This document shows positions 8,790-57,055 of a stretch of DNA of 64,000 nt, piece by piece. Each line of letters starts with the position of its first letter. The stretch's first letter is position 1. The stretch lies in the NCBI GenBank assembly GCA_038087875.1, contig JAXLNO010005343.1, positions 62,001 to 126,000 on the forward strand. Reading direction: 5' to 3'. The stretch comes from Malacoraja senta. Lineage: Eukaryota. The position numbers and the translations under genes were made by a program. The notes under the pieces are model-generated. The model was not told the DNA's origin. It was given only the letters and a program-made list of their open reading frames with translations, and did not search any database.

Positions 8790-8844
8790 ATGTTGTCCAG
8801 CATTGCACTTCGCTGTTTCTCTTTTTGGGGGATAATTTTCACAG
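8790..8844 (+). CDS. Gene A exon 1: signal peptide MLSSIALRCFSFWGIIFT(G)
   Basis: ATG at 8790, hydrophobic 18-aa leader, phase-1 donor G|gtacat. The 161-nt intron ends in ...ttttctttcctttag, in frame with the V exon. Confidence 0.82.
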
Positions 8845-9005
8845 GTACATGGCATCCCCATAAACCCTTTATACAGACTAAAATCTACATCTATTCAATG
8901 GTTCTTTAATGCGTGACTTTATTTCCATTTGCAATTAGCCCTGCTCCTGCGTTTAACCTTCTGGGGTGAAATATTCCTAATCGGGCCTGTTTTTCTTTCC
9001 TTTAG

Positions 9006-9326
9006 GTAATGGGAAAACTGCAGACAAAGTAACTCAAGTTCCTCAAGCAGTGAATGTCTCGACGGGCCAAAATGCTTCGTTTCACTGCTCTGTTCCCTTC
9101 TTTCGTGAAGGGCCCAGCGTAAGCGTACATTGGTGGAAACAGGGTGAAAATGTTTTTTTCATCCCAGACCCTGACGGGAGAACGGTTTCCGGCGTCGGTA
9201 CTAAATTCAGTGGCTTCCTGAAAATAGTCAATGTGAGCCGACAGGATGCCGGAGTATATTATTGTACCATCACCCTCTGTGGCACTTTAGTTGGCAACGG
9301 AACCGGGTCGACTTTAGTTGTGTTGG
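9006..9326 (+). CDS. Gene A exon 2: germline-joined V(J)-type Ig domain
   Basis: KVTQVP...NASFHC...VHWWKQ...[17 protein letters not shown]...[11 protein letters not shown]. Has the canonical B-strand Cys, C-strand Trp, DxGxYYC and a J-like GxGSTLxV. Strong acceptor, donor G|gtaagt, phase 1-1. Confidence 0.93.
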
Positions 9327-9994
9327 GTAAGTAGGTTTAAACGTGTAACGAATGCGATTTCGCGACTGTGATATTGCCCTGCAAGTAACGTGTTTTTTCA
9401 GATTTGAATCATTCATACAGCCAGATGAATACTATAAATATTGCAATTGGTAAATCATACCATAGATGGTCTGCATGCTGATATGTATAAACAATACGTT
9501 TTAGCGATATTAATCAAAACGTATCTTATGTATTGGAAGTTTATTTCCAAAGCACAGCATAACATTAGTACAATACAGGTACCATTGTAGTGCCCGTTGT
9601 GAATACGGAAAAGACATGTGCAACTGTCGTAGTGGGTGACCCCATATGATGTACCATTTCGCCTGCGTTAGATCAAGAGGACTGTTTGTTTTTATATTGG
9701 ACGTTAGAGTCATTCAATTGTAACCGTGGCCTCCACATGAATAAGTTTGGACGCTAATGTTGCGAACGTAAAATAGCGAAGAATCGGAACCCAAATTTCC
9801 CTCAACATTTCAAATGACCTGCATGGTGTTCCGCACCTACCACCTAAAATTCTCATATCACGACTAAATTACAATTTTCAGAATTGTTTAATCACAATGT
9901 TTGCAAATGATCGGGGAAATAGTCGGCAGCAGAACATTTACATGTTTGGCATTTACCCGAGACGGCAGTGTTGCAAGAATGTACCATCATGTTG

Positions 9995-10845
9995 TGGGAA
10001 CTGCAGATGCTGGTTTAAACCGAAGACACAAAATGCTGGCGTCATTCAGCGGGACAGGCAGCATCTCTGGATAGAAGGAATGGGTGACGTTTCGGGTCGA
10101 GACCCTTCTTCACACTGTCAGGGGAGACGGAGATACAGAAATAAGGAAATGTATGGTGTGAAAACGAGACAAAGGGGATGGCGATCAGGGGAAATGTAGA
10201 ATATATCATTGTTAGCTAGGAAAAGGGAACAATAAAGTAAACAGAGATGAAATGTAAACGAGGACAGTCAGACTAGTCGGAGAATTGGGTAGAGGATGGA
10301 TGGAGAGAGAGCGAAGGCAAGGGTTACTTGAAATTATAGGTCAATATTCATACCGCTGGGGTGTAAGCTGCCCAAACGAATTACGAGGTATTGTTCCTCC
10401 AATTTGCGCTGGGCCTCACTTTGACAATGGAGGAGGCCCAGGACAAAAAGATCAGTGTGGGAATGGGAGGGGGAGTTAAAGTGTTGGCTAGTGGTAGGAT
10501 CCCGTTAGAGGTGGCGAAAATGCCGGAGAATTATGTGCTGTATGCGACGGCTGTTGGGGAGAACGGTGAGGACTAGGGGGACTACGTCCCTGTTGCGACT
10601 GGGGGAGGGGGAGCAAGCGCGGAGCTGCGGGACATCGAGGAGACCCCAGTGAGGGCATCGTTTATGATGGAAGGGAGGAATCCCTGTTTCCTATTGAATG
10701 AAGACATCTCAGATGTCCTGGTATGGAACACCTCATCTTGGGCGCAGAAGCGGCGTAGACGGAGGAATTGGGAGTCGGAGAAGAGTCTCTACAGGACGCA
10801 GGGTGGGATACACATTTACCATCATGTTTTTCTTCACTAGACAGC
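9995..10845 (-). mobile_element. Penelope-like element fragment in the gene A V-C1 intron
   Basis: A minus frame reads SQFLRLRRFCAQDEVFHTRTSEM (PLE RT C-terminus). It ends in the recurrent PLE terminal repeat (cgacccgaaacgtcacc...ccagagatgctgcc). Confidence 0.75.
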
Positions 10846-11005
10846 ACGAGTAAACGTTATCTCTGATTTAAATTCGGGTATAAAGGTTCCGTTTACATTA
10901 TTATAAATGCACAACGAACGCGCGAATCCGCCTCACAGAAACCATTCACAGTCCGCGCACTCATTTTGTACTAATATAACCGTATCACTAACCTTCATTC
11001 CCTAG

Positions 11006-11311
11006 TTCCGCCAACTCCGTTGAAAATTTATTCTGGAATTCCCGAGAAGACGGAATCCTTCGTTATTCTCTGCGTGACATCTCCCTTTTACCCAAAGAAT
11101 ATCAGCTTCATGTGGTATCAAGATGGTAGAAAAACTACAACGGATTTGGTTAATAGCAACAAGCCCACCGCAGATGGATTGTATGAAGCTTCCAGCCGAT
11201 TATCAGTGACACAGTATGTCCCGAGCGGCACCGTTTACACCTGCCTTGTGAATCATGTAACCCACCGTGTTCCTGCAGCAGCCACTTACGTTGTCATCAA
11301 CTCCGACACAG
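11006..11311 (+). CDS. Gene A exon 3: C1-set Ig domain
   Basis: (V)PPTPLKIY...[21 protein letters not shown]...[12 protein letters not shown]...YTCLVNH shows the C1 hallmarks CxxxxFYPxxIxxxW, DGxY and YxCxVxH. Acceptor cattccctag, donor G|gtaaga, phase 1-1. Confidence 0.93.
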
Positions 11312-15348: not shown

Positions 15349-15442
15349 GTACTAACATCGTCAATTGTGTCAGGATAATGTGCGGTTTAGTACTACTGCC
15401 TCTTCTCATTGCAACGTGTTGTATTGCAAGAAAAAAATAAAG
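15349..15442 (+). CDS. Gene A candidate TM exon [30 protein letters not shown]
   Basis: Phase-1 acceptor (catttcaatcttacag). Hydrophobic run with Arg at its N-terminal edge and basic stop-transfer RKK. In-frame TAA at 15438-15440, then a donor ag|gtaaag at 15443. Confidence 0.55.
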
Positions 15443-17308: not shown

Positions 17309-18906
17309 CAGTGCCCTCCATAATGTTTTGGACAAAGACCCATCACTCATTTATTTGCCGCTGTACTCCACAATTTGAGATTTGTAACAGAAAAAAAAAT
17401 CACATGTGGTTAAAGTGCACATTGTCAGATTTTAATAAAGTGCATTTTAATCATTTTTGTTTCACCGTGTAGGAATTACAGCAGTGTTTATACATAGTTC
17501 CCTCCCCCCATTACAGGGCACCATAATGAAAGTAGTCATGTTTAGTATTTTGTTGCATATCCTTTGCATGCAATGACTGCTTGAAGTCTGCGATTCATGG
17601 ACATCACCAGTTGCTGGGTGTCTTCTCTGGCGATGCCCTGCCAGGCCTGCATTACAGTTATCTCTAGCTTATGCTTGTTTTGGGGGCTAGTACCCATCAG
17701 TTTTCTCTTCAGCATATAAAAGACATGCTCAATTTGGTTCAGATCGGGTGATTGACTTGGCCACTCAAGAATTGACACATTTTTAGCTTTGAAAAACTGC
17801 TTAGTCGCTTTAGCAGTATGTTTGGGGTCATTGGATTGCTGTGAATGAACGCCGGCCAATGAGTTTTGATGCATTTGTTTGAAATTGAGCAGATAGGATG
17901 TGTCTATACACTTGAGAATTCATTATGCTACCACCATCAGCAGTTGTATCATCAATGAAGATAAGTGAGCCAATACCTTCAGCAGCCATATATGCCCAGG
18001 CCATAACACCCCCACCACCATGTTTCACAAATGAGGTGGTATGCATCAGATCTTGGGCAGTTCCTTCTCTCCTCCATACTTTGCTCTTGCCATCATTCGA
18101 ATATGTTAATCTTCGACTCATCTGTCCACAAGACCCATTTCCAGAACTGCGGTTGCTCTTTTAAGTACTTCTTGGCAAACTGTAACCTGGCCATCCTGTT
18201 TTTGCGGCTAACCAGTGGTTTGCATCTTGCAGTGTAGCCTCTGTATTTTTGTTCATGAAGGCTTCCGCGGAGAGTGGTCATTGACAAATCCACACCTGAC
18301 TCATGAAGAGTGTTTCTGATCTGTCGGACGGGTGTTTGGGGATTTTTCTTTATTATAGAGAAAATTCTTCTCTCACCAGCTTCCATGGCCTGTCTGTCCC
18401 TTTGCGATTATTAAGCTCAAAAGTGCACTCTTTCTTCTTAATGATGTTCTAAACAGTTGATTTTGGTAAGCCTACGGTTTGGCTGATGCCGCTAACATTT
18501 TAATTCGTGTTTCTCAGTCTCATAATGGCTTCTTTGACTTTCATTGGCACATTTTCGGTCCTCATGTTGATAAGCGGCAATAAACGTTTTCAAAGGTGAT
18601 GGAAAGACTGGAGGATAGACTAGATGCTGAGCACCCCCTTAAACACACCTGAGCAATTGCAAACGCCTGTGAAGCCATGTGTCCCAAACATTATGGTGCC
18701 ATGAAATGGGGGGACTATGTTTAAACCCAGCTGTAATTTCTACATGGTGAAACCAAAATGTATAAAAATGGCCTTTAATAAAACCTGACAATATGCACTT
18801 TAACCACACGTGATTTTTTTTTAAATTACAAATCTCAAATTGTGCAGTACAGAGGCAAATAAATAAATGATGGGTCTTTGTCTCAAACATTAAGGGGGGG
18901 GCACTA
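17309..18906 (-). mobile_element. Tc1/mariner DNA transposon, near full length, defective; long IR/DR-type TIRs
   Basis: ~220-bp inverted repeats at 17309-~17528 and ~18682-18906, with TA to the left. The transposase is split over three frames (18386-17542): TDESK, QQSNDPKH (catalytic D replaced by S) and SPDLNQIEH. Confidence 0.92.
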
Positions 18907-19097
18907 TTACTCGCTTTTTTTTTGGTACTGTTGGAGCATCAGAAGTGATAGACACTTTTATTCATGTAATAGGCCGTCGAATCTGTTTTAGAGCATGATT
19001 GTGTCGTTCTCCGCAAGAATCAATTCACCTCTGTTTCGAAGATGCATACTTTCCTCGTTTAGTCTATGGAATGTGCAGGTGAAGCGAGTGTGCCTTA

Positions 19098-19238
19098 TTT
19101 TTAGTTTAGATTAGTTTCGTTTAGTTTCGTTTAGTTTCGTTTAGTTTAGTTTAGTTTAGATTAGTTGCGTTTAGTTTAGTTTAGTTTAGATGCGTTTAGT
19201 TTAGTTTAGTTTAGTTTAGTTTAGTTTAGATTAGTTTA
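19098..19238 (+). repeat. (TTTAG)n pentanucleotide microsatellite with TTTCG/GATTA variants, tail of a minus-strand SINE
   Basis: Directly visible tandem array abutting the SINE sequence gatacaacgcagaaaaaggccc. Confidence 0.9.
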
Positions 19239-19754
19239 GAGATACAACGCAGAAAAAGGCCCTTTGGCCCACCGAGTCCATGCCGACCAACGATGCCCGC
19301 ACACTTACCATATCCTACACAAAGTAGGAACAGTTTTACAATTATACCAAGCCAATTAACCTACAAACCTGTACGTCTTTGGACTGTGGCACCCGGTCTC
19401 GGGCGCTGTGTGGCAGCAACTCTAACGTTGCGCCAACGTGCCGCCCCAAATCTGCGCAAAATCTGAGCAAATCCAGGATAATTCCAATGCCGGTCAATCA
19501 AGAAAGGACAGGTACACATATATGAACGCATTCAGGCTAGATATCGGCACCTCCGCCCTTCGGCATGCTTCGGCGTACAATAAGGTGTTGATTGGCCTTA
19601 GCTCTGCGTTTACCATTGCCAACCTAACGATTGACGGCTTTACTTATTTAATACATATATCATCTCCTGACAGAAAATATAAAGTGGAGAAAAAAGTCAA
19701 ATTCTTGTCCTTGCACATAATGTATCAAAAATATTTATATGGCAAAGTTAGACA

Positions 19755-20104: not shown

Positions 20105-20302
20105 NNNNNNNNNNNNNNNNNNNNNNNNNNNNNNNNNNNNNNNNNNNNNNNNNNNNNNNNNNNNNNNNNNNNNNNNNNNNNNNNNNNNNNNNNNNNNNNN
20201 NNNNNNNNNNNNNNNNNNNNNNNNNNNNNNNNNNNNNNNNNNNNNNNNNNNNNNNNNNNNNNNNNNNNNNNNNNNNNNNNNNNNNNNNNNNNNNNNNNNN
20301 NN
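20105..20302. other. Assembly gap (N run)
   Basis: Run of N characters. Confidence 0.99.
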
Positions 20303-20680: not shown

Positions 20681-22249
20681 CACATACACACACTCTCACA
20701 CAAACACACACACACACACAATCAGACTTAAGAAGGGTCCCGACCCCAAGAGTCACCTGTCCATTTTCGTCAGAATGCTGCCTGACCCTCTGACTCACTC
20801 GAGCACTTTGTGTCTCTTTGGTATAAACCAGTATATGCCGTTCATTTATGTTACTTTTAGTTGGCAGCCTGTTGTAATAATCTCTGATTTTGCGATGCTC
20901 TCGTGGCTGCATGAGATTTAAAGCAACTTAAAAAATGAACTAATATTCTTTCCATTAAATTTTCATCTCGTAGACCAAGCAGAAACCAATGCATGCTAAA
21001 GTGATCTACGCTCCGTTCGTTACGGTAGGAAACACGAAAAGAGAGCAAACAATTGTACGGATAATGACACTGACAGCTAATAAAGCAAATGCGAGGTGCA
21101 GATGTTATCTATTCAGAATGGAATCCCAAGTAGTGTCCGTGCTCAAATTGATGTCTTGTTATTTGTGTGATTACTTATCAAGTCCATTCTCTGACAAAAA
21201 GCATCAACAACCCTCAGAGAAAGGGCGAGATGTACTATATTACAAGCATGGCGCACTGATTTTACGTCAAAATTCCTAACCAACATTTCACCTTCAACAC
21301 TTGGGGTGAAATGGGTTGCAAATGATTGCCCAAGTTATGTTCAAGAAAGTTTCGGTGTCCATGCGTTTAGCAACTGTGCTCCCTGTCTTTGCATATGTTT
21401 GGTAAAGGTAGGCACCTAAATTATAATTTCTGTAAAATAATATGCACTTTCATGCGTGTGTTTACCGCATTCTTTCCAGTCGCTTTGCAATCGCTGAATG
21501 TTTGAAGTGTACGGACAGATTAAAAACAAACATGATCAGAAATGTGAAAACTGTACATCATATGAATAAAAATCGATACGGTCAGAGACGAAACCAATCC
21601 GTCTTGACTCGGTTGGGGAAAAATAAACATAGTTTAGTTTAATTTAATATTGTCACATATATAGTGGAACGCCTTTTGTTGCATGCTATCAGTCAAAGAA
21701 AAGACTATACATGAGTATTATCAAGCCGTCCACAGTGTACCATTAAAGGATAACAAACTACAAATATCATTAAATGGGAAGGGCTGGAACGTTGGGATTC
21801 CGAAATCTGTAATATTGTAAGGGTCGTTGTGCACGGAATAAATGCTCCGCGGGTATGGCTGGATCCGTAAAATCGGTAATAAAGTAAGCATATCAATTTC
21901 TTGGCCTTATTTCAGAACAGCAGGAGAGTAGAGAAGCACAGGTGTTCATGCAAGTACAGAAGCAGTGAATAGGAAGTGGAGGGTTAAAGGACTAAAGCAG
22001 AGACTGGCGATACGGTGTGTAGCCAACCGAAAGACAAAGCAATTGATAATAATATGATCAAACTCTATTCCTTAAAGATATAGAAGAAACAATGAACGGC
22101 AGATGTTGGTTTAACAAGGAAGACAAAATGCTTGAGTATATCAGCGGGCCGGATAGCATTCCTGGAAAACTTGTGATAGGTGACGCTTCAGGTCAAGACC
22201 CTTCAGATTAATGACGTTTCGGGTCGGGACCCTTTCACCTGGAATATCT

Positions 22250-26147: not shown

Positions 26148-27130
26148 ATAGAAACATAGAAACATAGACAATAGGTGCAGGAGTATGCCATTTGGCCCTT
26201 CGAGCCCGCACCGCCATTCAATATGATCATGGCTGATCATCCAACTCAGTATCCCGTACCTGCCTTCTCTCCATACCCCCTGACCCCCTTAGCCACAAGG
26301 GCCACATCTAACTCCCTCTTAAATATAGCCAATGAACTGGCCTCAACTACCTTCGGTGGCAGAGAATTCCACAGATTCGCCACTCTCTGTGTGAAAAATG
26401 TTTTTCTCATCTCGGTCCTAAAAGACTTCCCCCTTATCCTTAAACTGTGACCCCTTGTTCTGGACTTCCCCAACATCGGGAACTATCTTCCTGTATCTAG
26501 CTTGTCCAACCCCTTAAGAATTTTGTAAGTTTCAATAAGACCCCCCCTCAATCTTCTAAATTCTAGCGAGTACAAGCCGAGTCTATCCAGTCATTCTTCA
26601 TATGAAAGTTTTGACATCCCAGAAATCAGTCTGGTGAACCTTCTCTGTATTCTCTCTATGGCAAGAATGTCTTTCCTCAGATTAGGAGACCAAAACTGTA
26701 CGCAATACTCCAGGTGTGGTCTCACCAAGACCCTGTACAACTGCAGTAGAACCTCCCTGCTCCTAACATACCATTCGCTTTCTTCACTTCCTGCTGCACC
26801 TGCATGCCTACTTTCAATGACTGGTGTACCATGACACCCAGGTCTCGTCGCATCTCCCTTTTTCCTAATCGGCCACCATTCAGATAACAGTCTACTTTCC
26901 CGTTTTTGCCACCAAAGTGGATAACCTCACATTTATCCACATTATACTGCATCTGCCATGCATTTGCCCACTCACCCAACCTATCCAAGTCACCTTGCAG
27001 CCTCCTAGCATCATCCTCACAGCTAACATTGCCCCCCAGCTTCGTGTCATCCGCAAACTTGGAGATGTTGCATTCAATTCCCTCGTTCAAATCATTGATA
27101 TATATTGTAAATAGCTGGGGTCCCAGCACC
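26148..27130 (-). mobile_element. CR1 (HER1-like) LINE 3' portion, young
   Basis: ORF 26722-27129 LGPQLFTIYINDL...KFADDTKLGG, C-terminal TRGHSLRIRG...FFTQRV, and an (atagaaac)n terminal repeat. Confidence 0.92.
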
Positions 27131-28039
27131 GATTGAACCCGGTTCTCTGGCGCAGTGAAGCAGCAACTCTACCGCTGCGCCACCGCGCTGCCTCTGTTGT
27201 TTACGATTGAAGTAAATTGTTGAGTAAACAGCTAAACATATATAGCTCTAGGTGACTGCCATAGACAACTCCTGAAATGATATCCAGATTTTAAATAGTC
27301 AGTGGACCAATTTGTGAAATAAAATAACTGTCACCATCTACCCCCACAAACACCCTACCCATAACTTTACATCTCACCCCACACGCTTAAATCGCCTGCC
27401 TGTGCACGCACGGCATACAAAAAAACGCGCGCACACTATTTAAGAGAGAATCAAGTCAAGAGAGCAACTTAAGAGTGACATGGGAGTGACCAACCAATTT
27501 TGCCTGGAATTCAATTCCTTTCCCTTTAATGAAGCCTGAAACATATGCGTCTGCAGAATATGACTGCGCATCCGCTGTTAAGATCTGGGAATCATCAATT
27601 AGCATTATTGATGGCCTCAAACTGCGCTTCAAACATTGACAGTGAGCTATCAACCTGCTATGAGACACAAGACCGCAGGTACAAAACCATGCTGACTATC
27701 CCTAATCAGCCCGTCTGTCTAAAGTGCATATATTTTAACAGTAACTAGTCTACCACATATGTCGGCCTCACGGGTTTATAGTTCCCAGGGGTGGGTGGGG
27801 GGGGCAATGACTTCATTGGAGGAAAGAAGAGGATACTTTATTGCCTTCCATCACAGTGAGGAACGTGGTGGAGCCGCTGTGGTGGATGTTTATGTTAATT
27901 TTTATGTAGTTGTGTCTTGTTGCTTTTTTTGGTATGACTGTATGGCAATTCAAATTCTCTGTATGTTGAAAAACATGTTTAGCTAATAAATTACATGAGT
28001 TACGAGTTGAGAGTTATTAGCTTCCTACTGTGTCCTCTG

Positions 28040-29810
28040 TAAAGATCTGATCAAGCCTGGGAGATTTGTCTACCTTCACACAACGTAGGACGTCCAGTAC
28101 TCCATCGACCGTAATACCGACTTTCCTCAAGATCCTTCCATTAACTGTCCCAAATTCTGAGATGCCTCCGTCTTTTTCCATAGCAAAGCCTCAGTTTCTC
28201 TCATTGTCTAAACTTCCTCACACCCAGGTGCCTTGTCTTTCACTCTAACCTGAATGTGCCTGCCCAGAACTCTTGTCATCATACTTTTTAAAGTATCCCA
28301 CTTTTCAAATGCTTCGTTCCCAGCAATTATACTAGTGCAATCAACTTAAGCTACTCCTTGACCAATACGATCAAAGTAGGCCCTGACCCAAATAGGTAAT
28401 TTAACGAGCGCGACGGCCCTATCTCTATCCTTAGCTATCTTTAAACTATCTTTAAACTAATTGAACAGCAGTCAATGGTCGCAGAAGGCTCACCCAAAGA
28501 ACGCATCAGTCACATGCTCTTCCCAATTTCTTAAGAGTAGATCAAGCTCTGCCCTCTACCATGTCGGGCCCTCTGCATGTTGCCTGAGGAAACGTTCCTG
28601 AACACATTTGACACATTCCACCCCACCTAAGCAGTCCCAGTGTATGTTTGAAAGTTAAAATCACCGACCATGATAACCTTATTAGTTTTGCAGCTGCCTG
28701 CAATGCCGGGGCATATTTGATCTTCTAATTCCTGTTAACTATTTGTGAGTCACAACAAGGTGATAATCCCCTTTTTTATGTCTCCGCTCTTCCCATATAG
28801 TCTCACTGGATGAACTATCAGTAATGTTATCTCGGACTAATGCCATGACATTCTCCTTAATCAATAAAGCAACAGCCCCTCCTCTTTTACCCCCAGACCT
28901 ATCTCTCCTGCAGCACCTGAATCCTGGAACATTAAGTTGCCAGTCCTGCCCCTCTGTTAGCCAGGTTTCCTTAATGGCTACGGCATTCCAGTCGCACAGA
29001 CCTATCCACACCCAGAGTTCATCTGACTTATCAGTAAGGCCTCTCGCATTAAAATAAGTCCAATTCAATCCAACAGTCCTTCCTCGCTCCCAACTGTAAT
29101 CCTTTCTATTCTGTCCTCTGACCTTATTTCATCACCATGCATACGCGTTCCAGCCTCTCATCTGTCTCTGTCTTGCTTCGGATCCCACCCCCTTCCAATC
29201 TAAATCAAACCCTTTAAGGGATTCCCGTTTCTCCTTAAAAGTATGCCAATAAGGTTGGACACCCCGACCTGAGAAAAAAGACTGGCAATGCAACTGATTT
29301 CCTAACCCCCCCGCCCCCTAAGGCCACCCCTCAACCTCTTGCGCTCCAAGGAAAACAGTCGCAGCCTATCGAGTCTCTCCTTAGAACGCAAGCCCTGCAT
29401 CATGGTAACATTCTTTTGAATCTTCTCTGAAAACTCTAGCTTAACTATTTCATTCCTACAGTATGTCAACCATAATTGCACAGAAAACTCCAGGTGCGGT
29501 CTCACCAACATATTGTACATCTGTAATATAGCATCCTAAACACAATGCCCTGATCAATGACGGTAAACATTCCAACAACTTCCTCACACACACTGTCACT
29601 GTGTCGCCACCTTCAGAGAGCGATGTTCTTCTACACCCTAGGTCGCTCCGCAAAATTTCCAAGATTTTGCCATTCGCAATATATATCCCTCCCTGATATA
29701 AACACATCAATTTGGAATTTTCTGAGTTACCTTCCACCGTTGATTGTATTGCGACTCTCCCAATTGATCTAGATCCTGCTGTAAACTCAGACAATCATCC
29801 TCACTGTCTA
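28040..29810 (-). mobile_element. Degraded CR1 with endonuclease and C-terminal remnants
   Basis: YFNARGL...AIKETWL...CRRDRSGGKRGGAVALLIKE (28739-29068) and LVRPHLEF (29302-29520). Confidence 0.8.
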
Positions 29811-30497
29811 CAATGCCATCAGTTATCGTGCCATTCGTAAATGTACCCTATGCCACCTACATTCTCTTCCACGACGTTCAAAAAACGGGGGAAACCAGCA
29901 CTGATCCGTGTTGCGCCAATTGTTTACTGACCAATACATTTTGAAAGTTACCATCTACTAACTTCTTCCACACGGTCAGTTTTAGAAACATAGAAACATA
30001 GAAAATAGTTGGAGGAGGAGGTCATTTGGCCCTTCAAGCCTGCACCACCATTCATTGTGATCATGGCTGATCATCCATAATCAGTAACCCGTGCCTGCCT
30101 TCTCCCCATATCCCTTGATTTCGCAAGCCCATAGAGCTTTATCTAATTCTTCAACTATCAAACGATCAACATTGGTAAATGATGCAGGTGAGCCCTTCAG
30201 CAACTATTTCCACGCAGGAACATTAAAAAATTGTTCACATCGTCTGAGATAGCACGGACAATGTGTGTGGCTAGTCACTAATGCGCAGTCTTATGTTTAG
30301 CCAACCAGAGCAGTGATAAATGAATCAATGTGTTCTTTCGCAGAAGGAAATATATTAATATAATAACATTTTTCATATTAGTAAAGGCATTTGTTTTTTT
30401 GCTATCATTTATAATGTCCATTACTGGCGGTGGTGGTGTATTTTTGGAAATATGTTGATGGATGTAATAATTAAAACAACTTGCTGATAACTTTCAG

Positions 30498-30608
30498 ACA
30501 ATTCAATTCCAATGTGATCCAAAGTTAACATATACTACTCTAAACATCACTGGTCTAGAGATATCTACTAAATCCAGATACTTTGAAGAAAGCACGATAT
30601 ATGCCCAG
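30498..30608 (+). CDS. Orphan cytoplasmic ITIM exon TIQFQCDPKLTYTTLNITGLEISTKSRYFEESTIYAQ (probably gene A)
   Basis: Acceptor gataactttcag, open 111-nt phase 0-0 frame, perfect donor CAG|gtaagt. It contains LTYTTL and ends in TIYAQ|. The Tyr-Tyr spacing of 23 aa and the YxQ| junction match gene B exon 39319-39405. Confidence 0.7.
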
Positions 30609-30696
30609 GTAAGTGTAACAAGAGCCTATTAATGGAACTTCACGAATCAAAGATGAATTCATGTTGACCAATTTTCTTTGTACGGTGTCTGTCGTT

Positions 30697-33420: not shown

Positions 33421-33444
33421 CCGTCTGTATTTTCGATAGGGACA

Positions 33445-34090: not shown

Positions 34091-35047
34091 AATCGAAAAC
34101 ATATAGATAGAACAACCAAAATTGATTATTTTGCTCTGTCTTCGCTTCGATTATTTTGGATGGATTACATGGTCCTCGGCCAGGCTAGTATTTATTGATC
34201 ATTCCTAACAGCGATTGAGGAGATCTTAATGGCCGCATACTTGAACCTCTGCAATCTACATGCTACAATCTCGCGCTGCTCCGGGAGGCAGTCCTGAAAT
34301 GTAGACCCAATGAAGATGAAGGACTAATGATATACCATATGTCAGGGTGGTGTGTGACCTTGACAGGAACGTGCAGGTAGTAGTGTTTCCATACTGCCCT
34401 TCTAGCGTTGGAAGAAATGTGCGTAGGGCGATGGGCTGGTGCCACTGAGACGACCTTCTTTTTCCAGAATTATGCCAAGTTTCCTAAGAGTTACTGGAAC
34501 TCATTCAGACAAATATATATATTTTTTCATATACTTAACTTCTGCTTTGAAATGGAGGAAAGATTTCATGGTGTCAAATTGACTGAATTCGCGTTTATTG
34601 TCATTTGCACAAGTATGGCTAGGTACAAGTACAATGACAACCTTGCTCGCAGCAGCACCACCGGCACCAAGAATCAGGCAGCATACTACAACATGACATA
34701 CATACTTATACTTAAGTTATACGTAACTTCTGCTGGGCAATAGAAAGAATAAAGAAACGTGGCAGAAAACAAGTAATTAACGCAAAACCCACTTTTAAAA
34801 AAAATTATAGTTGTGCCATCATGTTTTATTGTTGAGGTAGAATTAGGATAGCAGGCTAACTAGGATTAAGAACCATATGGTTGTACGAAAGTGCCTGTAC
34901 CTGAACCTGGCGGCGTGGGATTTTAGGCCTCTGCGCTTCCTGCAGGATGGTAGAGGTGGGAGACGGCATCTCCCAGATGTTTGGGAGCCTGGACGATAGA
35001 TGCCACCATCTTGAGGAAATGCCTAATGTTGATGCTTTAAATGACAA

Positions 35048-35990
35048 TGGACAATAGACAATAGGTGCAGGAGTAAGCCATTAGGCCCTTCGAGCCAGCA
35101 CCGCTATTTAATGTGATCATGGCTGATCATCCCCAATCAGTACCCCGTTCCTGCTTTCTCCCCATATCCCCTGACTCCACTATCTTTAAGAGGCCTATCT
35201 AGCTCTCTCTTGAAAGTATCCAGAGAACCGGCCTCCACTGCCCTCTGAGGCAGAGAATATCACAGACTCACAACACTCTGTGCGAAGAAGTGTTTCCTCG
35301 TCTCCGTTCTAAATGGCTTACCCTTATTCTTAAACTGTGGCCCCTGGTTCTGGACTCCCCCAACACAAGGAATATGTTTCCTGCCTCTAGTGTGTCCACA
35401 CCCTTAATAATCTTATATGTTTCAATAAGATTCCCTCCCATCCTTCTAAACTCCAGAGTTTACAACCCCAGCCGCTTCATTCTCTCAGCATATGACAGTC
35501 CCGCCACCCCGGGAATTAACCTTGTAAACCTACGCTGCACTCCCTCAATAGCAAGAATGTCCTTCCTCAAATTAGGGGACCGAAACTGCACACAATACTC
35601 CAGGTGTGGTCTCACTAGGGCCCTATACAACTGATGAAGGACATCTTTGCTCCTGTACTCAACTCCTCTTGTTATGAAGGACAACATGCCATTCGCTTTC
35701 TTCTTTGCCTGCTGTACCTGCATGCTTACTTTCAGTGACTGATGAACAAGGACCCCCAGATCCCGTTGTACTTCCCCTTTTCCCAACTTGGCACAATTTA
35801 GATAATAATCTGCCTTCTTGTTTTTGCTACCAATGTGGATAACCTCACATTTATCCACATTAAACTGCATCTGCCATGCATCTGCCCACTCACCCAACCA
35901 GTCCAAGTTACCCTGCATTCTCATAGCATCCTCCTCACAGTTCACACTGCCACCCGGCTTTGTGTCATCTGCAAATTTGCTAATGTTATT
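35048..35990 (-). mobile_element. CR1 LINE 3' portion, young
   Basis: ORF 35460-35945 ...LVRPHLEYCVQFRSP...VQRRFTRLIPG, with an (atagaca)n tail. Confidence 0.92.
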
Positions 35991-37144
35991 TGAGTCCCTT
36001 CATCTAAATCATCGATGGTGAGGATGGTGGGGATGGTGGGGATGGTGAAGTACAGAGAGCTGGTTGATGACCAGTATGGATAAGATCGGCCAAATAGCAT
36101 GTTTTCTTTCTCAAAGATACACCATCTAATCTCATCTACTGAATTCCCTGACCCGACATGTGTCCCCCCTTTATATCGGTGACACCAAACCATAAAGATG
36201 AACCAATATAGCAAACACCCTACATGATAGAACAACAGTTATGGCCGGATTCAAAACAGGTTGTTAATTGTTCAGCTGCATATCAAAATGACAAAATAAA
36301 GTTAAATAATTCTACTGGACCGATTGGATATTTTGTTTGCAGACAGGTGCTGTGTGGCCTGCGGAGTTCCCCCGCCATTTCGTTTTTTGCTCAAGGTTTC
36401 AGCACGTGCAGTTTCTTGTGTCTCCATTGTGTGAAGATCTTTTTGTTTCCGCCTGTATAATTGTGAATCTGTAATACTGCCTCTTTGCTTGCCATTCATT
36501 GAGTACATCTATTTTTCCAACTAAAGTTTGGCAGTTATAGAAGGAACTTAAAGACCCACCCCGAATGCCTCTTGGAATATGACAGCAGCTTGGAACAGGA
36601 CGCTTTAACGGATGAGTGGAAAGATAACAGGTCAACATAGATCTAAAGAGGCAATTTAATTCCGAATTCATTAACTTAGTAGTTTAGTGGTAACTCAATT
36701 TCGTCGACGCAATGAACAGTAGGGCTAACGTACAACTGGGACTATTTAACGGCTTTGTCTGGCTTTAGCTGATTTACCTTTGGCGAGTGCATGACTATGT
36801 TTAAAGGGATAAGGAGAGTGCAGCAGCCTTTCGGTAGACATTCACCAAACATAACCTCTGTTATAAATACGTTAAGAGTGATAAGTTTATTCGGAGTGCA
36901 ACGTTTAGTTTATTTTAATTTCGTTTATTGTCACGTACATCTTTTCTGTCGCGTGCTATTCAATTAGCGGAAAGACTTACATGATTACAATCAAGCCGCC
37001 CACAGTGTACAGATACAGGATAAGGGGAGTAAAGTTTAGTGCAAGTCCAGTACAGTCCGATTAAAGATAGTCCGAGGGTCACCAATGAGGTAGACGATTG
37101 CACAGGACCGCTCGCTAGTTGGTGATAGGATCGTCTAGTTGCCT

Positions 37145-38235
37145 CATAGAGTCATAGAGAGTCATAGAGTGATACAGTGTGGAAACAGGCCCTTCGGCCC
37201 AACTTGCCCATGCCGGCCAACATGTCCCACCTACACAAGTCCCATCTGCCTGCGCTTGGTCCATATCCACCCACCCCCCCAAACTGTTCAATCCATGCAC
37301 CTGTCTAACTGTATCTTAAAAGATGGGATAGCCCCAACCTCAACTACTTCCTCTGGCAGCTTGTTCCATACACCCACCATCTTTTGTGTGAAAAAGTTAT
37401 AACTCGGATTCCTATTAAATCTTTTCCCCTTCACCTTGAACCTATGTACTCTGGTCCTCGATTCCACTACTCTGGGCAAGAGACTGTGTGCATCTACCCG
37501 ATCTATTCCTCTCATGATTTTGTACACCTCTATAAGATCACCCCTCACCCTCCTGCACTCCAAGGAATAGAGACCCAGCCTACTCAACCTCTCCCTATTG
37601 CTCACGCCCTCTAGTCCTGGCAATATCCTCGGAAATCTTTTCTGAACCCTTTCAAGCTGGACAATATATTTCCTATAACATGGTGCCCAGAAATGAACAA
37701 AATATTCTAAATGCCGTCTCACGAACGTGTTATACAACTATAACATGACCTCCCAACTTGAAGAAGGGTCTTGACTCGAAATGTCGCCCATTCCTTCTCT
37801 CCAGAGATACTGCCTGTCCCGTTGAGTTACTCCAGCTTTTCGTTTCTCTCTTCGGTTTCAACCAGTATCTGCAGCTCCTTTTTTACACACCTCTCTATAC
37901 TCAATACTCAGACTGATGAAGGCCAAAGTGCGAAAAGCTTATTTGACCACCTTATCTACATGCGACTCGACTTTCAAGGAACCATGCACCAGCACTCCTA
38001 GATCCATCTGCTCTACAACACTCCCCAGAGGTCAACCATTTACTGTGAGGTCCTGCCCTTGTTAGACGTCCCAAAATGCAACACCTCACACTTCTCCGTA
38101 TTCAATTCCAACAACCATTCCTCAGCCCACATGGTCATTCGATCCCGATCCTGCTGCAGTCTTTCACAACCATCTTTACTATCTGCAAAAGCACTCACCT
38201 TTGTATCATCAGCAAATTTGCTAATCATGCCCTGT
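37145..38235 (-). mobile_element. CR1 fragments of a second subfamily with an inserted PLE terminal repeat (~37760-37880)
   Basis: ORF 37288-37737 RRHLEYFVHFWAP...GDLIEVYKI and 38040-38282 ISKFADDTKV. Confidence 0.85.
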
Positions 38236-38860
38236 ATGTTCTCATCCAAATGACACGGTAACAGCTGGGAAGAAACTGTCACTAGATCTGGACGTATGCG
38301 TTTTCATACTTCTGTACCTCTTGCCTGGTGGGGGAGGGGAGAGGCCCTGTTGGGTTGAGACCCTGTCTTGATTATGCCGGTGACTTTGCGAGGCAGCGTG
38401 AAGTGGAGATGGAGTTAATGGCAGGGAGGTGGTTTTGCGTGACGGTTTGGGCTGGTCCACAATTCTCTGCTATTTTTTGCGGTCTTGGATGGAGCTATTC
38501 CCATATTCCTGTGATACATCCCGATAAAATGCTTCCAACGGTGCAGAGTCCTGAAAAGCGCTACATAAATAAAATCTATTATTATTATCTGTTCAGTTTT
38601 CTTAAAGTATGAGGAATACAGACAGGATAGATATTCAGAGTCTATTTCTTAATATTGTGGAGAATTATTTAACTGACGAGCGTATGCTTAGGATAAACAT
38701 GTATGCAGCATGCGGTCATGACCATGGACGAGCTGGCAAGGTGTTTGTGGAGGCAGACACAAATACAGCCTATCACTTGCATTTCCACAGGCACTTTCAT
38801 GGGGAAAACCTAGAGAGATAAGGATCTTATGCGGTTAGCTAGGATTTGCGGTGAAAGTCG

Positions 38861-39100: not shown

Positions 39101-39223
39101 CTACTTAAAAATCATGATTCCTGCATACACTGTTTCATTATTCTTCGCCGTTCTTGGATCTTTCAGAGACGCGGTGAGATCCAGAGTTGCATAGGTCAGT
39201 TTATTTTGAGACATTTCCTTGAC
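39101..39223 (-). CDS. Gene B last coding exon VKEMSQNKLTYATLDLTASLKDPRTAKNNETVYAGIMIFK* (ITIM plus ITSM)
   Basis: Acceptor tgattatttttcgacag, phase 0, 123 nt ending in TAG. Contains LTYATL and TVYAGI. Confidence 0.9.
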   Translation of the reverse strand, partial: VKEMSQNKLTYATLDLTASLKDPRTAKNNETVYAGIMIFK

Positions 39224-39318: not shown

Positions 39319-39405
39319 CTGGCCATAGGTAATTTGTTTTTCCCGCCGTCTGTTTTTCTCAGTTTTCTTCTTTCCGCTGAAGTTCAAATCTGCGTACGTT
39401 GGATA
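39319..39405 (-). CDS. Gene B cytoplasmic exon YPTYADLNFSGKKKTEKNRRREKQITYGQ
   Basis: Acceptor atgttccctcag, donor CAG|gtaaaa, 87 nt, phase 0-0, 95-nt intron to the last exon. The ITIM ITYGQ|V is completed across the junction. Confidence 0.9.
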
Positions 39406-39747: not shown

Positions 39748-39769
39748 CTACACCGCAAAAAATATAAGG

Positions 39770-41393: not shown

Positions 41394-41437
41394 CTGTTTT
41401 TCGAAGTGATGAGTTCTGTCCTCAATATTTTCTGGGG
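41394..41437 (-). CDS. Gene B first cytoplasmic exon (A)PENIEDRTHHFEKQ
   Basis: Acceptor ttttattatgttctctactag, donor CAG|gtaatt, 44 nt. It is the phase 1->0 bridge required between the TM and ITIM exons. Confidence 0.75.
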
Positions 41438-42109: not shown

Positions 42110-42220
42110 CTTCAGTACTGTGTAATTTGCACCGCCTGGCAAAAAATAGCAGCGCTAGAATAATTAACACGCATGTGGCAAATCCACCCGTCAGAAAGTA
42201 GACAAGTTTAACGCGTGTTC
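42110..42220 (-). CDS. Gene B transmembrane exon GTRVKLVYFLTGGFATCVLIILALLFFARRCKLHSTE
   Basis: Acceptor cttttattttccctttag, donor G|gtaaga, 111 nt, phase 1-1. Uncharged 22-aa hydrophobic core followed by RRCK. Confidence 0.88.
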
Positions 42221-47888: not shown

Positions 47889-48170
47889 CCATTCCAAGAA
47901 TTCTGTGAGTTTCAACGGTCGGAACCAGGAGGGTGACGTGAGACACATTGCAACTATAAACCGATCGGCTATCCACTACTTGCAGGAAGCTGGAAGCAAG
48001 GTATAATCCCTCGTCGTTCCGTATTTTAGTGGTACTTATTCCAGAAGTGATTTCGTGGTCATCTTTATACCAGGTAAGTTCACAGTCCTTCGGGAAAAAC
48101 GGAGCAGTTGTACAGTTTAGTGCCAGGGAAGGAGTGTTCATCTGTTTAATCTTCAAAGGCGTCGGTGACA
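47889..48170 (-). CDS. Gene B C1-set Ig domain exon
   Basis: (V)SPTPLKI...LNCTTAPFFPKDCELTWYKD...EGLYLASSFL...YSCNVSH. Acceptor aattgtttgcag, donor G|gtatga, 282 nt, phase 1-1. Confidence 0.92.
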
Positions 48171-48299: not shown

Positions 48300-50082
48300 T
48301 TGTTGGGAAACTAACCGAAAGGGCGGGACGCCTAAAAGCCAACTAACCGAAAGGCTGCGTCGCCAACAAGTCAATTAACCGAATGGCCGCCCAACCGAAA
48401 AGTCAAATAACCGACATGACGTCACAGGGTGCGGGACTTGTCAGCGATTGGTCCAGATCCCTGCGTACATCACGTCTGACTACACTTATGCAGAGCAGCT
48501 ATGGAAGTTGAGAAAACTGGCACTGACCGCGGTCTATGTGAAGGGACAGCACCTACCAACAATGAAGGCACCATAAAACCAGCTGCCACAAGCCCTTCCC
48601 ACGGAACGGGGTTTTAACTCGGCATGAAAAGTCAAAAAAGAGTTACATTAATTTAATAACAAAAATGTTACATGTATAAATGGTTCTTACATTTGGGAAA
48701 CTGGTTAATTAAGTGGTGGGTTTATTTCCCTGTCCTAACTATGCCTTCGCTTTAGCAGGTGGTCACATCCATTCCATCCCTCTCTTGCAAATGTATAGAT
48801 GCAGGCGCATGAAAAGCCGATGAAATGAGATGAGAAATGAGAAATACATGAAGCCGATGAAATGAGACAACTGTCACACCAAAGATACACAAAATGCTGG
48901 AGTGTCTCAGTGGGACAGGCAGCATCTCTGGAGAGAAGGAATGGGTGGCGTTTCGGGTCGAGACCTTCAGACACAGTCTTCAGGTCTGAAAAATGGTTTC
49001 GACCCGAAACGTCACGCATTCCTTCTCTCCAGAGATGCTGGCTGTTCCGCTGAGTTACTCCAGCTTTTTTGTCCATCTTCGGTTAAGGCAGTTTACAGAT
49101 TACCTGGTGTTTTTGTGCGTGTGAGCTTGTGTGCGTTACGCAGGCAACCAGACGGTAATACATAAAACATGCTTCTTGTTGTCAGGAGGGGGGAGAGGCA
49201 GGAGATAACATTGTTCGTTGTCATGCACACTTGTCATCGGCCCGCCAGGGAATTTATGTGTGTCCCCCATGTTTAAAAAGCGATTTACTATGGCTGCCAA
49301 TGCCCCGAGGCGAGTGACCCCGCGGCCGGGGTGGGGATGAATCACCCGGTGTGGGTGTCAGGTTGTAAATCACCCCGTGAGTGGGTCGGGGTCCGGGGGT
49401 CGGGGGGGAAATCACCCTGGTGTGGGGGTTGGGGTCTGATGGCGGTGCATCGTGGTCAATGACTCTGAGAGGGACCAGCCTGTCCCACACCTCTGCTCCA
49501 CCCAGCGCTGCCGACACACAACCGTCACAGTGCGGCCGCACGGTAGAGACGAGGCGGAGGGCGGCCGTGGTCATGGGAGAGTGGGGGTTGTCCGAAGGGA
49601 TGCGCTCCTTCGGCCCCTTACAACTTGGTGCTCGGATTCAAAGTCCCCAGTCACCTATGGCTTGTGTGGGAAAATGACCCCCACCCTCCCGTCTCCACCG
49701 GCCAGTGATGTGATGGACGCGAGGGTCTGGACCAATCGCTGACGTGTCCGGCCCCCCGGCGATGTCATGTCCGTTATTTGACTTTTCGGTTGAGCGCCAT
49801 TCGGTTAGTTGGCTTGTAGGCGACGCAGCCTTTCGGTTAGGTGGCGTTTCGGCAGAGCGGCCATTCAGTGAGTTTGCTTTTAGGCGACGCAGCCTTTCAG
49901 TTAGTTGGCTTTTAGGCGTCCCGCCCTTTGGTTAGTTTGCATTTAGGCGCCCCACCCTTTCGGTTAGTTGGCGTTTCGGCTTTGTACGCTTTCGGTTATT
50001 TGGCGTTTCGGCTTAGTTTCCCTTCAGTTATTTGGCTTCCACTTCTTGGTTCGGCTTCTCGTCCTTCGACGCCACCGGGTAC
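48300..50082. mobile_element. Foldback/MITE-like non-autonomous DNA element with repetitive long inverted termini
   Basis: 48311-48435 (aactaaccgaaagg... arrays) is the reverse complement of ~49760-49940. The right arm carries extra tttcggtt units to ~50080. No transposase ORF. Confidence 0.7.
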
Positions 50083-54000: not shown

Positions 54001-56506
54001 ACCTAGAGGGATACTCGGGTCCATTTGAACCTTAACACCTTCAACTCTCTCTATTTCTCGACCTCGCTATTTGTTTCTTCCAGTGCGTGGATATCCTCAC
54101 TCAACCACATCATTTTGCACCTGTCATATATTTACTTAATCGCTAACCCTGACCATAACCTTCTTAATTCGCCCTGTATCAAGCACGCCCTCTGTACTGT
54201 GGTGATTGTGTTGCTTTTTAGTGTTTTAGTTTTAGAGATACAACGCGGAACCAGGCCTTTCGGCCCATCGAGTCCGCGCCGGCCAGCGATTGCCGCATAT
54301 TAACACTATCCGACACACACTAGGGATACTTTTTACATTTACCAAGCCAATTTACAACCATACCTCTACGTCTTTGGGGTGTGGAAGGAAACAGAAGATC
54401 TCGGAGGGAACCCACGCGTTCACGGGTAGAACGTACAAATTCCGTAGTCAGGATCGAACGGGGGTCTCCGACGCTGCAAGCGCTGTAAACTCTATCGCTG
54501 CGCCACCATGCCGAGTTTTCATAGGTGTTGTGTGTGTGTGTGTGGGGGGGGGGGTGACTTAATAGAATGAAATGTTTAGCAACTACATTTACTCAACATG
54601 AAATAGGACACCATCTCTAACGGCGAATGTTCGGCACCATCATGCTCCCGTCCACGTAACAAAAGCATTCTTTCTACATCGGTGGGTAAATCTTTGATCT
54701 CCATCCCAAACTGATCTATGCAAGTGCTCTCACCAGAGAATTTCCGCGGATATTTCACAAGTAGTGATCGGAAAGAAAGAAAGGGTGCATGGGACTGACA
54801 ATTTCGGTTTCCTGGTGGCGGGCACATAATTGATCTCTCCACTGCGACGCAAACTTCTTTTCCTCGGTTATTGTAATTTAATGTGGTGAAATGTTTAGTT
54901 TACAAGGTCTTGATTCCACTACTCTGGGTAAAAGGCGATGCATATACCAGATTTATTCCTGTCATGATCAGATACGCCTTAATAAGATCAACTCTTACCC
55001 TCCTGCGCTGCAAGGAATAACGTCCTAGCCTGCTTAGGCTCTCCCTATAGCTCAGACCCTCGCGTCGTGGCAACATCCTCGTAAATCTGTTCTATACCCC
55101 TTCCAGCTTAACTACATCATGCCTAGTTGCAGAGGCAGATACGATAGGGGCATCTTAGATATTTTTAAATAGGCAAATGCAGGGAATGGAAGGATGTGTC
55201 TCGCAAAGAGCGGATATTATTTTAACTTGGCACCATATTCGGCACTGAAATTGTGGGCCGAAGGGTCTATTCCTGTTGTATGTTGAGGAGATGTTGAATT
55301 TATTTTGAGCAGTTATAAGTTTCGAAATTGATGGGATGCTTTAGGTATTTGTCGTGTTCGCAATACACGTCACGGTGCTTAAACTGGACAAGGTATAGTA
55401 GCGTTTATGTGTGTATTCAGTAGTTGCTGATGTGGGATTGAAATAGTGCGCTGTGCGGAGGAAAGAGCGTACTCAGTTGGCTGAAGCTTTTTGGCATATT
55501 GCCACCCATCAATCGAGTATGCCGCTGACGTGTATTTATCATTCAGACTGAAGCTTCTGTTCTCCCACTCGAAGCTCTGCTGAGTTCCAATGAAACTCGA
55601 CGTAAAATGACGGATAACGTTTTGATTAATACTCTCAATTTGCAATTTAATCATTTGAATTCTGATACTAATTTTATCTTCTTTGTTTACATATTTTGTG
55701 ACTTGTTGCATTATTCTCAGATTTCCCCCCGTTTATAACTTAATGGGGTTGTTTTGTCTTCCACCCACATTAATGCGCCACCACGCACCCCACCTATTCT
55801 TCCTTGCTATACCTCTGAATTTCTTTAACAATTTTCACCATGAACTTTTGTTACTTCCGTTATAACGTTCTAGGCAGAAACTAATTTCTGTAGTCGCAGA
55901 TGTGTTGTGACTCGTATTTTATCATTCATTTTCTTTGAAACTATGAATTCCTAAAATCACGGTAGAATAGTCTTACACAAGATTGCGGTTAGAATATATC
56001 ACGCTCACTATTCATCAAATGTTTCTTCTATCAACATACGTTTTGTTAACATTTACTATTTGGATTAGAAATAACTACATAAATGGTCAAGTATGGTTAT
56101 TCTACAACAAAGAGCTCAATTCGTGAACCCCCAAGAATGCTCCATCATCTGGATATCACAGGTCTAGACTCGAACGCAATGTTTTTTTGACTAAACGACT
56201 GCAGCTACAATACTCGCTAACATATGACGGTTTATATTTCATTGACTACCATCTGCAATCTTAATCTATACTCCTTTCGCAGGATGCAGTTGAGGGGCCG
56301 CCAAGAAAATTAACCCTACACATAAAAATGATAACTAAATGATATGAAATTAAAGAATAATGATTGTCCAAAGAGCTCGTGGTCCAACAATCACGAAAAA
56401 CCAATTACTTAAATCGCTAGTGCAAAACTTCTAGTACAGACTTTATAACTCTGTAGCACACCATATTTGTTTTGTATTGTGATTCGAAACATCAAGTAAG
56501 ACTCAC

Positions 56507-56830
56507 CGTGCACAATAATCCTCGTGCCATTGCTTTTGGAACTCTTTCCTTCCCCGCGTCTCACACTGCAATAATAGATCCCGGAGTCACGGAAGCTCAC
56601 GTCCAACAGATGTAATTCGGCAAATCCCTTCAGTACATTGTTCATTGTCATCCTCCTGTTTGCGGTAGGATTCAAAGTCTCTTCTTGACCGTCTCTCTTC
56701 CAGTATACATCCACCAGTGCTTTCTGACCGAAGATTGGGAAAGTACAGTATAGGGATACATTTTCACCTTTCACTTTCGTTACCTTATCGGGAATCTGAC
56801 GCACCCTGAACGAGGAGGCCCCGTCAGTAA
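56507..56830 (-). CDS. Gene B germline-joined V(J)-type Ig domain exon
   Basis: FRVRQIP...GENVSLYC...VYWKR...AELHLLDVSFRDSGIYYC...SNGTRIIVH. Acceptor tttttaattctgacag, donor G|gtgagt, 324 nt, phase 1-1. Confidence 0.93.
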
Positions 56831-57000
56831 CTGTCAGAATTAAAAACAAACGTTAAACATGTGAAATGACAATGAACGGATTGATAAAAATCCAAATAGC
56901 TGAAATAGCTCGACCGAAAGGTAAGAGTTGTACATCTTATACTTTTCGCGGATTGACCTTTTCCCTGTTATTTTCGTTTAATAGAGGGAAATATATTAAC

Positions 57001-57055
57001 CTGTGTAACTCATGCGCAGGATCGAGAGAAACAGCAGCACGGCAAACATAAACAT
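57001..57055 (-). CDS. Gene B exon 1: signal peptide MFMFAVLLFLSILRMSYT(V)
   Basis: 55-nt coding leader, phase-1 donor G|gttaat, 170-nt intron to the V exon. Same leader length as gene A. Confidence 0.82.

Follow-up and report, generated by a model that had tools for sequence, protein, structure and literature searches.

In the genome of the chondrichthyan Malacoraja senta, a stretch of 64,000 nucleotides (NCBI GenBank assembly GCA_038087875.1, contig JAXLNO010005343.1, positions 62,001 to 126,000 of the forward strand) contains two convergent genes, gene A on the plus strand and gene B on the minus strand, each of which is predicted to encode a membrane-bound receptor of the immunoglobulin superfamily (IgSF). 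The whole 64-kb stretch is referred to as the window, and all coordinates are positions within it. Both genes are composed of a split leader exon, a variable (V) domain exon that includes a joining (J)-like strand, one exon for a constant domain of the C1 type, and a transmembrane exon, which in gene B is followed by cytoplasmic exons. Every splice site is canonical, and leader, V and C1 exons are joined at AG/GT junctions in phase 1 in both genes. Pfam assigns V-set and C1-set domains above the curated cut-offs to all four exons concerned, which bears out the domain types proposed in the initial annotation. Its account of a matching layout (55-nt leaders, first introns of 161 and 170 nt, V exons of 321 and 324 nt, and C1 exons that begin with V(P/S)PTPLKI) proved exact to the coordinate.

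Gene A starts with an ATG at 8790 in a 55-nt leader exon (8790–8844, plus strand; donor GTACAT), which is 98% identical to that of the Leucoraja erinacea orthologue and joins the V exon in phase 1 with the frame kept. Intron 1 comprises 161 nt (8845–9005). The V exon (9006–9326, 321 nt; Pfam V-set E 4e-10) contains the canonical Cys-Trp-Cys and a germline J-like G strand, and leads via a VPPTPLKI junction into the sole C1-set exon (11006–11311, 306 nt; Pfam C1-set E 6e-13). Exon 4 (15349–15442) encodes the transmembrane segment with the motif ..NCVRIMCGL.., in which the arginine occupies the outer third of the helix; a cysteine is located at the membrane boundary. The cytoplasmic tail consists of three residues, RKK, ahead of a stop codon at 15438–15440 that is preceded by a run of seven adenines and followed by a GT donor. 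The predicted product has 257 amino acids (aa), encoded by four exons, all of which are open. Because of the arginine in the transmembrane exon and the three-residue tail, gene A can be assigned to the activating type, as far as sequence tells. In DNA contigs of a related species, six substitutions are clustered in the first 40 bases of the gene A V exon (9006–9050), with few elsewhere.

Exon 4 is conserved in L. erinacea, where the frame continues: the adenine run at the exon end (15431–15437) counts seven bases in gene A versus six in L. erinacea, whose frame reads RKNK and is then spliced to an eight-residue terminal exon. In the window, the counterpart of that exon is an optional terminal mini-exon (20974–20999, plus strand, 26 nt, with an AG acceptor) that encodes DQAETNAC-stop and matches the C-terminus of the L. 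erinacea RefSeq model (P0007); it is coding only if the adenine run is one base shorter and otherwise forms part of the 3′ untranslated region. The difference in run length may be a species difference, a polymorphism or an assembly error in a homopolymer. The idea of a switchable signalling mode raised in the initial annotation found no support, since the six-adenine frame merely changes RKK-stop to RKNK plus eight residues, and thus the tail is short and devoid of a signalling motif in either frame; a homopolymer switch of gene A signalling was consequently dropped.

Gene B lies on the minus strand and begins with an ATG at 57055 in its 55-nt leader exon (57001–57055), which is separated by an intron of 170 nt from the V exon (56507–56830, 324 nt; Pfam V-set E 2e-11). 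The latter runs into a J-like strand (..SNGTRIIVH), and a VSPTPLKI junction connects it to the sole C1-set exon (47889–48170, 282 nt; Pfam C1-set E 5e-13). Exon 4 (42110–42220) encodes an uncharged transmembrane segment followed by RRCKLHSTE and shares 50% identity with the transmembrane region of a Mobula homologue (P0055). The 44-nt cytoplasmic exon 5 (41394–41437; APENIEDRTHHFEKQ), located by a phase and splice-site scan, goes from phase 1 to phase 0 and corresponds to the ..HFEEQ segment found at the equal exon position in shark homologues. Two exons with tyrosine motifs complete the tail—exon 6 (39319–39405), which reads PTYADLNF.. and ITYGQ (motifs PTYADL and ITYGQV), and exon 7 (39101–39223) with LTYATL and TVYAGI and a stop codon at 39103–39101. 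All seven exons are open and yield a product of 341 aa. The four tyrosines are of the immunoreceptor tyrosine-based inhibitory motif (ITIM) or switch motif (ITSM) type, spaced 23/13/22 versus 23/13/23 in a shark and 23/14/23 in a chimaera relative, and the tail can be aligned in full (E 6e-23 to 5e-17) with those of homologues from Mobula, Heptranchias and Heterodontus. Given the uncharged transmembrane segment and the four-tyrosine tail, gene B is predicted to be of the inhibitory type. The opposite signalling anticipated for the two genes thus finds its counterpart in the transmembrane arginine and minimal tail of gene A and in the four ITIM/ITSM-type tyrosines of gene B.

The two products are related over V and C1 (33% identity, E 7e-39), with the C1 domains sharing 41% and the V domains 26% identity, in keeping with the strong V divergence noticed at the outset. 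No heptamer/nonamer pair resembling a recombination signal sequence (RSS) is present near either V exon or elsewhere in the window; together with V exons that are continuous with their J-like strand, this agrees with the proposed non-rearranging V(J)-C1 nature of the genes. A tblastn search of the whole window with both proteins revealed no additional V or C1 exon, and hence each gene is considered to have a single C1.

The order of split leader, VJ exon and one C exon is also that of immunoglobulin light chains, and skates have germline-joined immunoglobulin light-chain clusters. Antibody light chains are, furthermore, the best solved structures for the family to which genes A and B belong (20–26% identity), some members of which carry the automatic name “Ig lambda-1 light chain-like”, and the V(J)-C1 ectodomains are of equal size. 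However, the C1 exon of both genes splices on to a transmembrane exon, from which signalling tails follow, instead of ending in a C-terminal cysteine plus stop; moreover, the C1 domains of the family are monophyletic and lie, with weak support, apart from light-chain C domains. Transmembrane and tail exons together with the family alignment refute germline-joined light-chain clusters, the probability of which is practically nil. Likewise, the absence of RSS from the window and the splicing of C1 to transmembrane and tail exons set the genes apart from rearranging antigen receptors.

Genes A and B have numerous relatives among cartilaginous fish. An exhaustive search of 1.84 billion representatives with a profile of the two C1 exons gave 1225 matches, the best single-domain ones being V-C1-transmembrane proteins of about 250–380 aa. 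Family members were found in the skates Amblyraja and Leucoraja, the rays Hemitrygon, Mobula and Pristis, the sharks Scyliorhinus, Heterodontus, Mustelus, Heptranchias, Cetorhinus and Chiloscyllium, and the chimaera Callorhinchus, with RefSeq models available in at least 15 chondrichthyan species. Word-indexed searches, one starting from a single member and the other from a family profile of 26 sequences, returned 46 and 60 proteins, respectively, all chondrichthyan (E down to 1e-157) and none from a bony vertebrate, with no score between E 1e-56 and the cut-off; the open reading frame of the gene B V exon, used as a word-indexed query, gave no match within a length window that left out full-length relatives. 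In each species, many family members reside on one chromosome. An alignment of the family displays a common signature, comprising YWWK.GE in strand C, a J-like strand NGTGS.L.V with a conserved N-glycosylation sequon (NGT) inside it, then the VPPTPLKI junction and C1 motifs, and finally a transmembrane segment ahead of a tail with four tyrosines.

Gene A shares 86–88% identity with models from Leucoraja and Amblyraja and 52–63% with proteins of rays and catshark; the same arginine-containing transmembrane exon is present in the Leucoraja model. The identity of gene B to Mobula, Heptranchias and Heterodontus proteins is 49–56%. Both genes carry the split leader, the type of J strand, the junction, the single C1 and the transmembrane segment of the family. 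On these grounds, they can be regarded as two intact members of a multigene family that extends across the Chondrichthyes. The clustered, SIRP-like family envisaged in the initial annotation was recovered, in that the nearest named relatives are SIRP-like; nor does it lack annotation, given the RefSeq models. Rather, the family is already in public annotation under inconsistent names assigned automatically, i.e., [quoted passage not shown] (SIRP-alpha-like), “SIRP beta-1-like”, “tapasin-related protein-like”, “Ig lambda-1 light chain-like”, “NCR3 ligand 1-like” and “CD276 homolog”, and genes A and B are new, defined members of it. Full-text literature searches on SIRP or paired receptors in cartilaginous fish yielded no description of this V(J)-C1 family.

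Upstream of the gene A orthologue in L. erinacea (locus L001), about 17 kb before its V exon, another C1 exon is present (L001:1671-2045; 36–39% identity to the gene A-type C1), and the cluster, therefore, extends upstream of the window start. In the same locus, L001:31273-37778 repeats the tail-relic region described below as well as upstream regions, which points to a tandem duplicate that has no counterpart in the window. RefSeq isoform models without the C1 exon were observed in Callorhinchus (P0193) and Mobula (P0204, P0205); these have a V-transmembrane-ITIM layout that resembles NKp30, and such skipping of C1 is possible because all exons are in phase 1.

In a maximum-likelihood tree of 58 ectodomains, gene A and gene B belong to two clades with support values of 99 and 100, respectively, each of which contains sharks as well as batoids; the A and B lineages, therefore, split before sharks and batoids diverged. 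In the family as a whole, 38 of 77 family-like proteins combine an uncharged transmembrane segment with tyrosine motifs in the tail, while at least 10 of the 77, distributed over several sublineages, have an early arginine or lysine in the transmembrane segment and a short tail without a tyrosine motif. This mix of both tail types is the hallmark of a family of paired activating/inhibitory receptors. For the window itself, the notion of a paired-receptor couple with near-identical ectodomains had to be abandoned in view of the 33% identity and the two separately supported clades. Judged from the tree, genes A and B are neighbours with opposite predicted signalling that represent separate, old sublineages rather than a recently duplicated pair with a common ligand. 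True activating/inhibitory pairs may exist within the A lineage, as suggested by the start of a tandem duplicate in L. erinacea and by an Amblyraja radiata model (XP_032892405; P0001), in which A-type V-C1 is followed by another C1 almost identical to the first and then by an uncharged transmembrane segment with an ITIM tail; this model is probably a fusion of an activating and an inhibitory A-type gene arranged in tandem.

Adjacent and convergent as they are, genes A and B might alternatively specify the two chains of a heterodimer, in the manner of an antigen receptor or of CD79, with V-C1 ectodomains the size of those of light chains or T-cell receptors (TCR) in both and with a cysteine at the membrane boundary of gene A. 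Gene B, however, lacks a matching extracellular cysteine, and the boundary cysteine of gene A is not conserved among A-lineage relatives. The conserved NGT sequon sits in the G-strand bulge, which in immunoglobulins and TCRs belongs to the V-V interface, and the copy numbers of A-type and B-type genes vary independently across species. A heterodimer is, thus, considered very unlikely.

Taken together, we regard genes A and B as likely to be intact, non-rearranging chondrichthyan immunoreceptors, A of the activating and B of the inhibitory kind, probably with different ligands. Members of the family would be type I membrane glycoproteins in which a V domain with its germline J-like strand precedes a single C1 domain and the transmembrane segment, the tail being either long with four tyrosines or nearly absent. 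Upon ligand binding, the gene B product would become phosphorylated at the tyrosines of its two motif pairs, and the phosphotyrosines would recruit phosphatases with tandem SH2 domains of the SHP-1/SHP-2 type, as SIRP-alpha does. The gene A product, on account of its transmembrane arginine and three-residue tail, is expected to pair with an adaptor bearing an immunoreceptor tyrosine-based activation motif (ITAM), of the FcR-gamma, CD3-zeta or DAP12 type.

Several observations weigh against this interpretation. The J motif of gene B is devoid of the first glycine of GxG; identity to L. erinacea in the exons (93–94%) barely exceeds that in the introns (87–94%), and the ratio of non-synonymous to synonymous substitution rates (dN/dS) of the V exon is close to 1, as would be expected of rapidly evolving immune receptors but also under relaxed constraint. 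In profile and structural comparisons, SIRP-alpha is just marginally ahead of PD-L1, TCR-beta, CD276, B7-H6, TAPBPR and light chains. Finally, not a single read fell on the gene B C1 exon in a single polyA RNA run from a related species (tissue unspecified, about 6% read), a result which is uninformative rather than negative.

Some of these observations would also be expected if one or both window copies were unexpressed or decaying. RNA support was not found in the runs concerned, since those containing gene A sequence, from the same and from a related species, are all DNA and the sole polyA run is the one mentioned above; moreover, the stop codon of gene A lies directly before a conserved donor, and both the J motif and the first cytoplasmic exon of gene B are shorter than in homologues. 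Against decay stand the four exons of gene A and seven of gene B, all open and with canonical splice sites, and the retention of the four tail tyrosines at conserved spacing. For the C1 exon of gene A, dN/dS relative to L. erinacea is about 0.56, albeit from small counts (13 non-synonymous versus 7 synonymous changes), and for the V exon about 1.07, also from small counts (15.5 versus 4.5 changes). In DNA contigs of another related species, the gene B C1 exon differs by 12 substitutions and no insertions or deletions. Fast evolution of V with open frames would fit ligand-driven change, and likewise relaxed constraint. Overall, decay or silence of a copy is given a small probability, and genes A and B are treated as intact receptors in what follows.

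With regard to known receptor systems, the closest parallels are those with SIRP. The tail of SIRP-alpha contains four tyrosines in two pairs, and SIRP-beta has a transmembrane lysine. Like SIRP, the family described here combines a non-rearranging V domain with a J-like strand and C1-set domains, forms a clustered multigene family, and includes predicted inhibitory forms with four tail tyrosines in two pairs as well as predicted activating ones, in which a basic transmembrane residue goes together with a short tail. Differences concern the number of C1 domains—one in genes A and B and in the family consensus, two in SIRP alpha/beta—and the basic residue, which is an arginine near the outer transmembrane end in gene A and a lysine in SIRP-beta. 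The family would, therefore, probably act in a SIRP-like mode while carrying one C1 domain where SIRP has two.

Whether this likeness reflects descent was approached by structural and profile comparisons and by a tree. AlphaFold modelled a shark member with confidence for V, C1 and transmembrane segment, and in a Foldseek search of Swiss-Prot, the top three matches of this model are the SIRP-alpha proteins of human, cow and rat, aligned over the ectodomain and through the tail. When compared with the PDB, the whole-family profile matches a lambda-type V-C structure best; next come UrIg2 and, in third place, the SIRP-alpha ectodomain (2wng), which is the best match that is neither antibody nor UrIg. 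Many members are called PTPNS1-like or SIRP-beta-like by the NCBI pipeline, and the four-tyrosine paired tail resembles that of SIRP-alpha. An exploratory C1 tree, which addresses the C1 phylogeny called for in the initial annotation, supports the monophyly of the family C1 domains (95); the placement of the family on the side of lungfish SIRP-like C1 domains and reptile multi-C1 proteins, away from the light-chain, heavy-chain and UrIg2-like C domains, is weak (83). The family might accordingly represent the chondrichthyan (co-)orthologue of tetrapod SIRP, with an ancestral SIRP that had one C1, the second having been gained later or lost here. The single C1, the identity of just 16–18% to SIRP-alpha and the lack of bony-vertebrate proteins among the matches of the word-indexed searches argue against orthology, which we consider possible yet doubtful.

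Another candidate counterpart is chicken PRARP, which, according to Fu et al. (2019), is reportedly a set of linked, non-rearranging VJ genes associated with the major histocompatibility complex (MHC). PRARP and NKp30 are listed together as VJ genes located in the MHC (PMC10751288), and PRARP is also named among the IgSF members with a joined VJ (PMC11599192). By description alone, there is a likeness, as genes A and B are linked, non-rearranging VJ-type IgSF membrane genes, too. Among the AlphaFold DB clusters, however, the sole close one is from a shark (E 3e-28), with all others at E 4e-16 or weaker, and a cartilaginous-fish counterpart of PRARP is deemed rather unlikely.

A relationship with NKp30 (NCR3) is suggested by the non-rearranging VJ-type V domain, by a J-like motif that contains GNGT, and hence the NGT sequon, as in NKp30, and by the arginine in the activating form's transmembrane segment. 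Structures of NKp30 match the V profile over the entire length of the profile (E about 1e-6), and the V-only isoform models in relatives (P0193, P0204, P0205) would accord with genes A and B being C1-bearing members of an expanded shark NCR3 family. The V profile, however, gives similar scores for a wide range of V and I-set domains, with NKp30 no higher than PD-L1, TCR-mu and light chains. Furthermore, NKp30 possesses neither a C1 domain nor an inhibitory four-tyrosine form, and the V-only isoforms retain the ITIM tail of the family. Such a membership appears improbable. The shark NCR3 sequences are MT914154-61 (cited in PMC12227049).

Elasmobranchs also harbour non-rearranging antibody-like genes, namely UrIg, with three C domains and in secreted form, and UrIg2 with 9–11 C domains (PMC12227049). 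These genes resemble A and B in that a split leader and a germline VJ exon precede C1-type exons, and UrIg2 (PDB 9dmx) is the best PDB sequence match for each C1 exon alone, with IgM, IgA, MHC and light-chain C domains close behind; the best-stretch match to the UrIg2 C1 is, however, weak (i-Evalue 3.5e-4). UrIg and UrIg2 have neither an ITIM tail nor a transmembrane arginine, while genes A and B have one C1 each, and membership in this group was rejected on account of the number of domains, the score per domain and the tree of C1 sequences.

A more far-reaching proposal would place the family in the proto-MHC, beside NCR3, as a surviving membrane-bound VJ-C1 lineage with SIRP, which would have gained a C1, NKp30, which would have lost the C1, and perhaps PRARP as its offshoots. 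We hold the chance of this being correct to be low. If true, the family would be a signalling-competent relative of the gene type that the RAG transposon entered, complementing the secreted and long UrIg genes. Relevance to the ancestry of antigen receptors is put forward as a hypothesis, and the family is a further non-rearranging VJ-C1 gene type to be placed in trees of antigen-receptor origins.

Much work has been devoted to the paired activating/inhibitory IgSF receptors of mammals (SIRP, KIR, LILR) and teleosts (NITR); to our knowledge, such receptors have hardly been studied in cartilaginous fish. Annotations under at least five unrelated names are here brought together as one family of sharks, rays and chimaeras, with an ectodomain resembling that of light chains and a tail resembling that of SIRP-alpha, which constitutes a testable candidate for innate recognition, by natural killer or myeloid cells, in the oldest jawed vertebrates. 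If the family turned out to consist of plain SIRP or PRARP orthologues, the main value would lie in improved annotation.

Downstream of gene A, the window preserves remnants of cytoplasmic exons. Searching with the tails of inhibitory relatives of the A lineage (P0001 and P0181; tblastn) revealed decayed inhibitory-tail relics at 19063–19098 and 19445–19510 on the plus strand, in which a tyrosine motif has been lost (PYAALNL-type to PKSAQNL). Further downstream, amid fragments of long interspersed nuclear elements (LINE), an orphan cytoplasmic exon (30498–30608, plus strand) has kept two intact tyrosine motifs, LTYTTL and TIYAQV, an AG acceptor and a GTAAGT donor, and aligns to the last-tyrosine region of the family tails. 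Activating members of such families usually derive from inhibitory ancestors, and the decayed and orphaned tail exons suggest, as far as such remnants can be read, that gene A descends from an inhibitory ancestor, too.

An assembly gap of 198 N (20105–20302) is located in the last intron or 3′ flank of gene A. It starts about 4.7 kb 3′ of the gene A stop codon and upstream of the mini-exon at 20974–20999, and overlaps no identified exon. Its flanks are collinear with the L. erinacea locus L001, of which they match one contiguous stretch. Between the transmembrane exon of gene A and the gap, three adjacent open reading frames on the minus strand (17542–18386) resemble a frame-shifted remnant of a Tc1/mariner-type transposase.

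The window is rich in repeats, which fill most of the 23.6 kb that separate the 3′ ends of genes A and B. The minus strand contains several LINE reverse-transcriptase fragments at 26700–38300, a region with a strongly negative GC skew, and a G/C-rich block of low complexity spans about 33400–34100. Within intron 2 of gene A, a very highly repeated element similar to short interspersed nuclear elements (SINE) is found at 9944–10938, with a related copy near 48300–48500 and 48735–49165; in genomic runs of two species, the contig depth summed over this SINE-like element amounts to millions, and numerous reads terminate or are joined within it.

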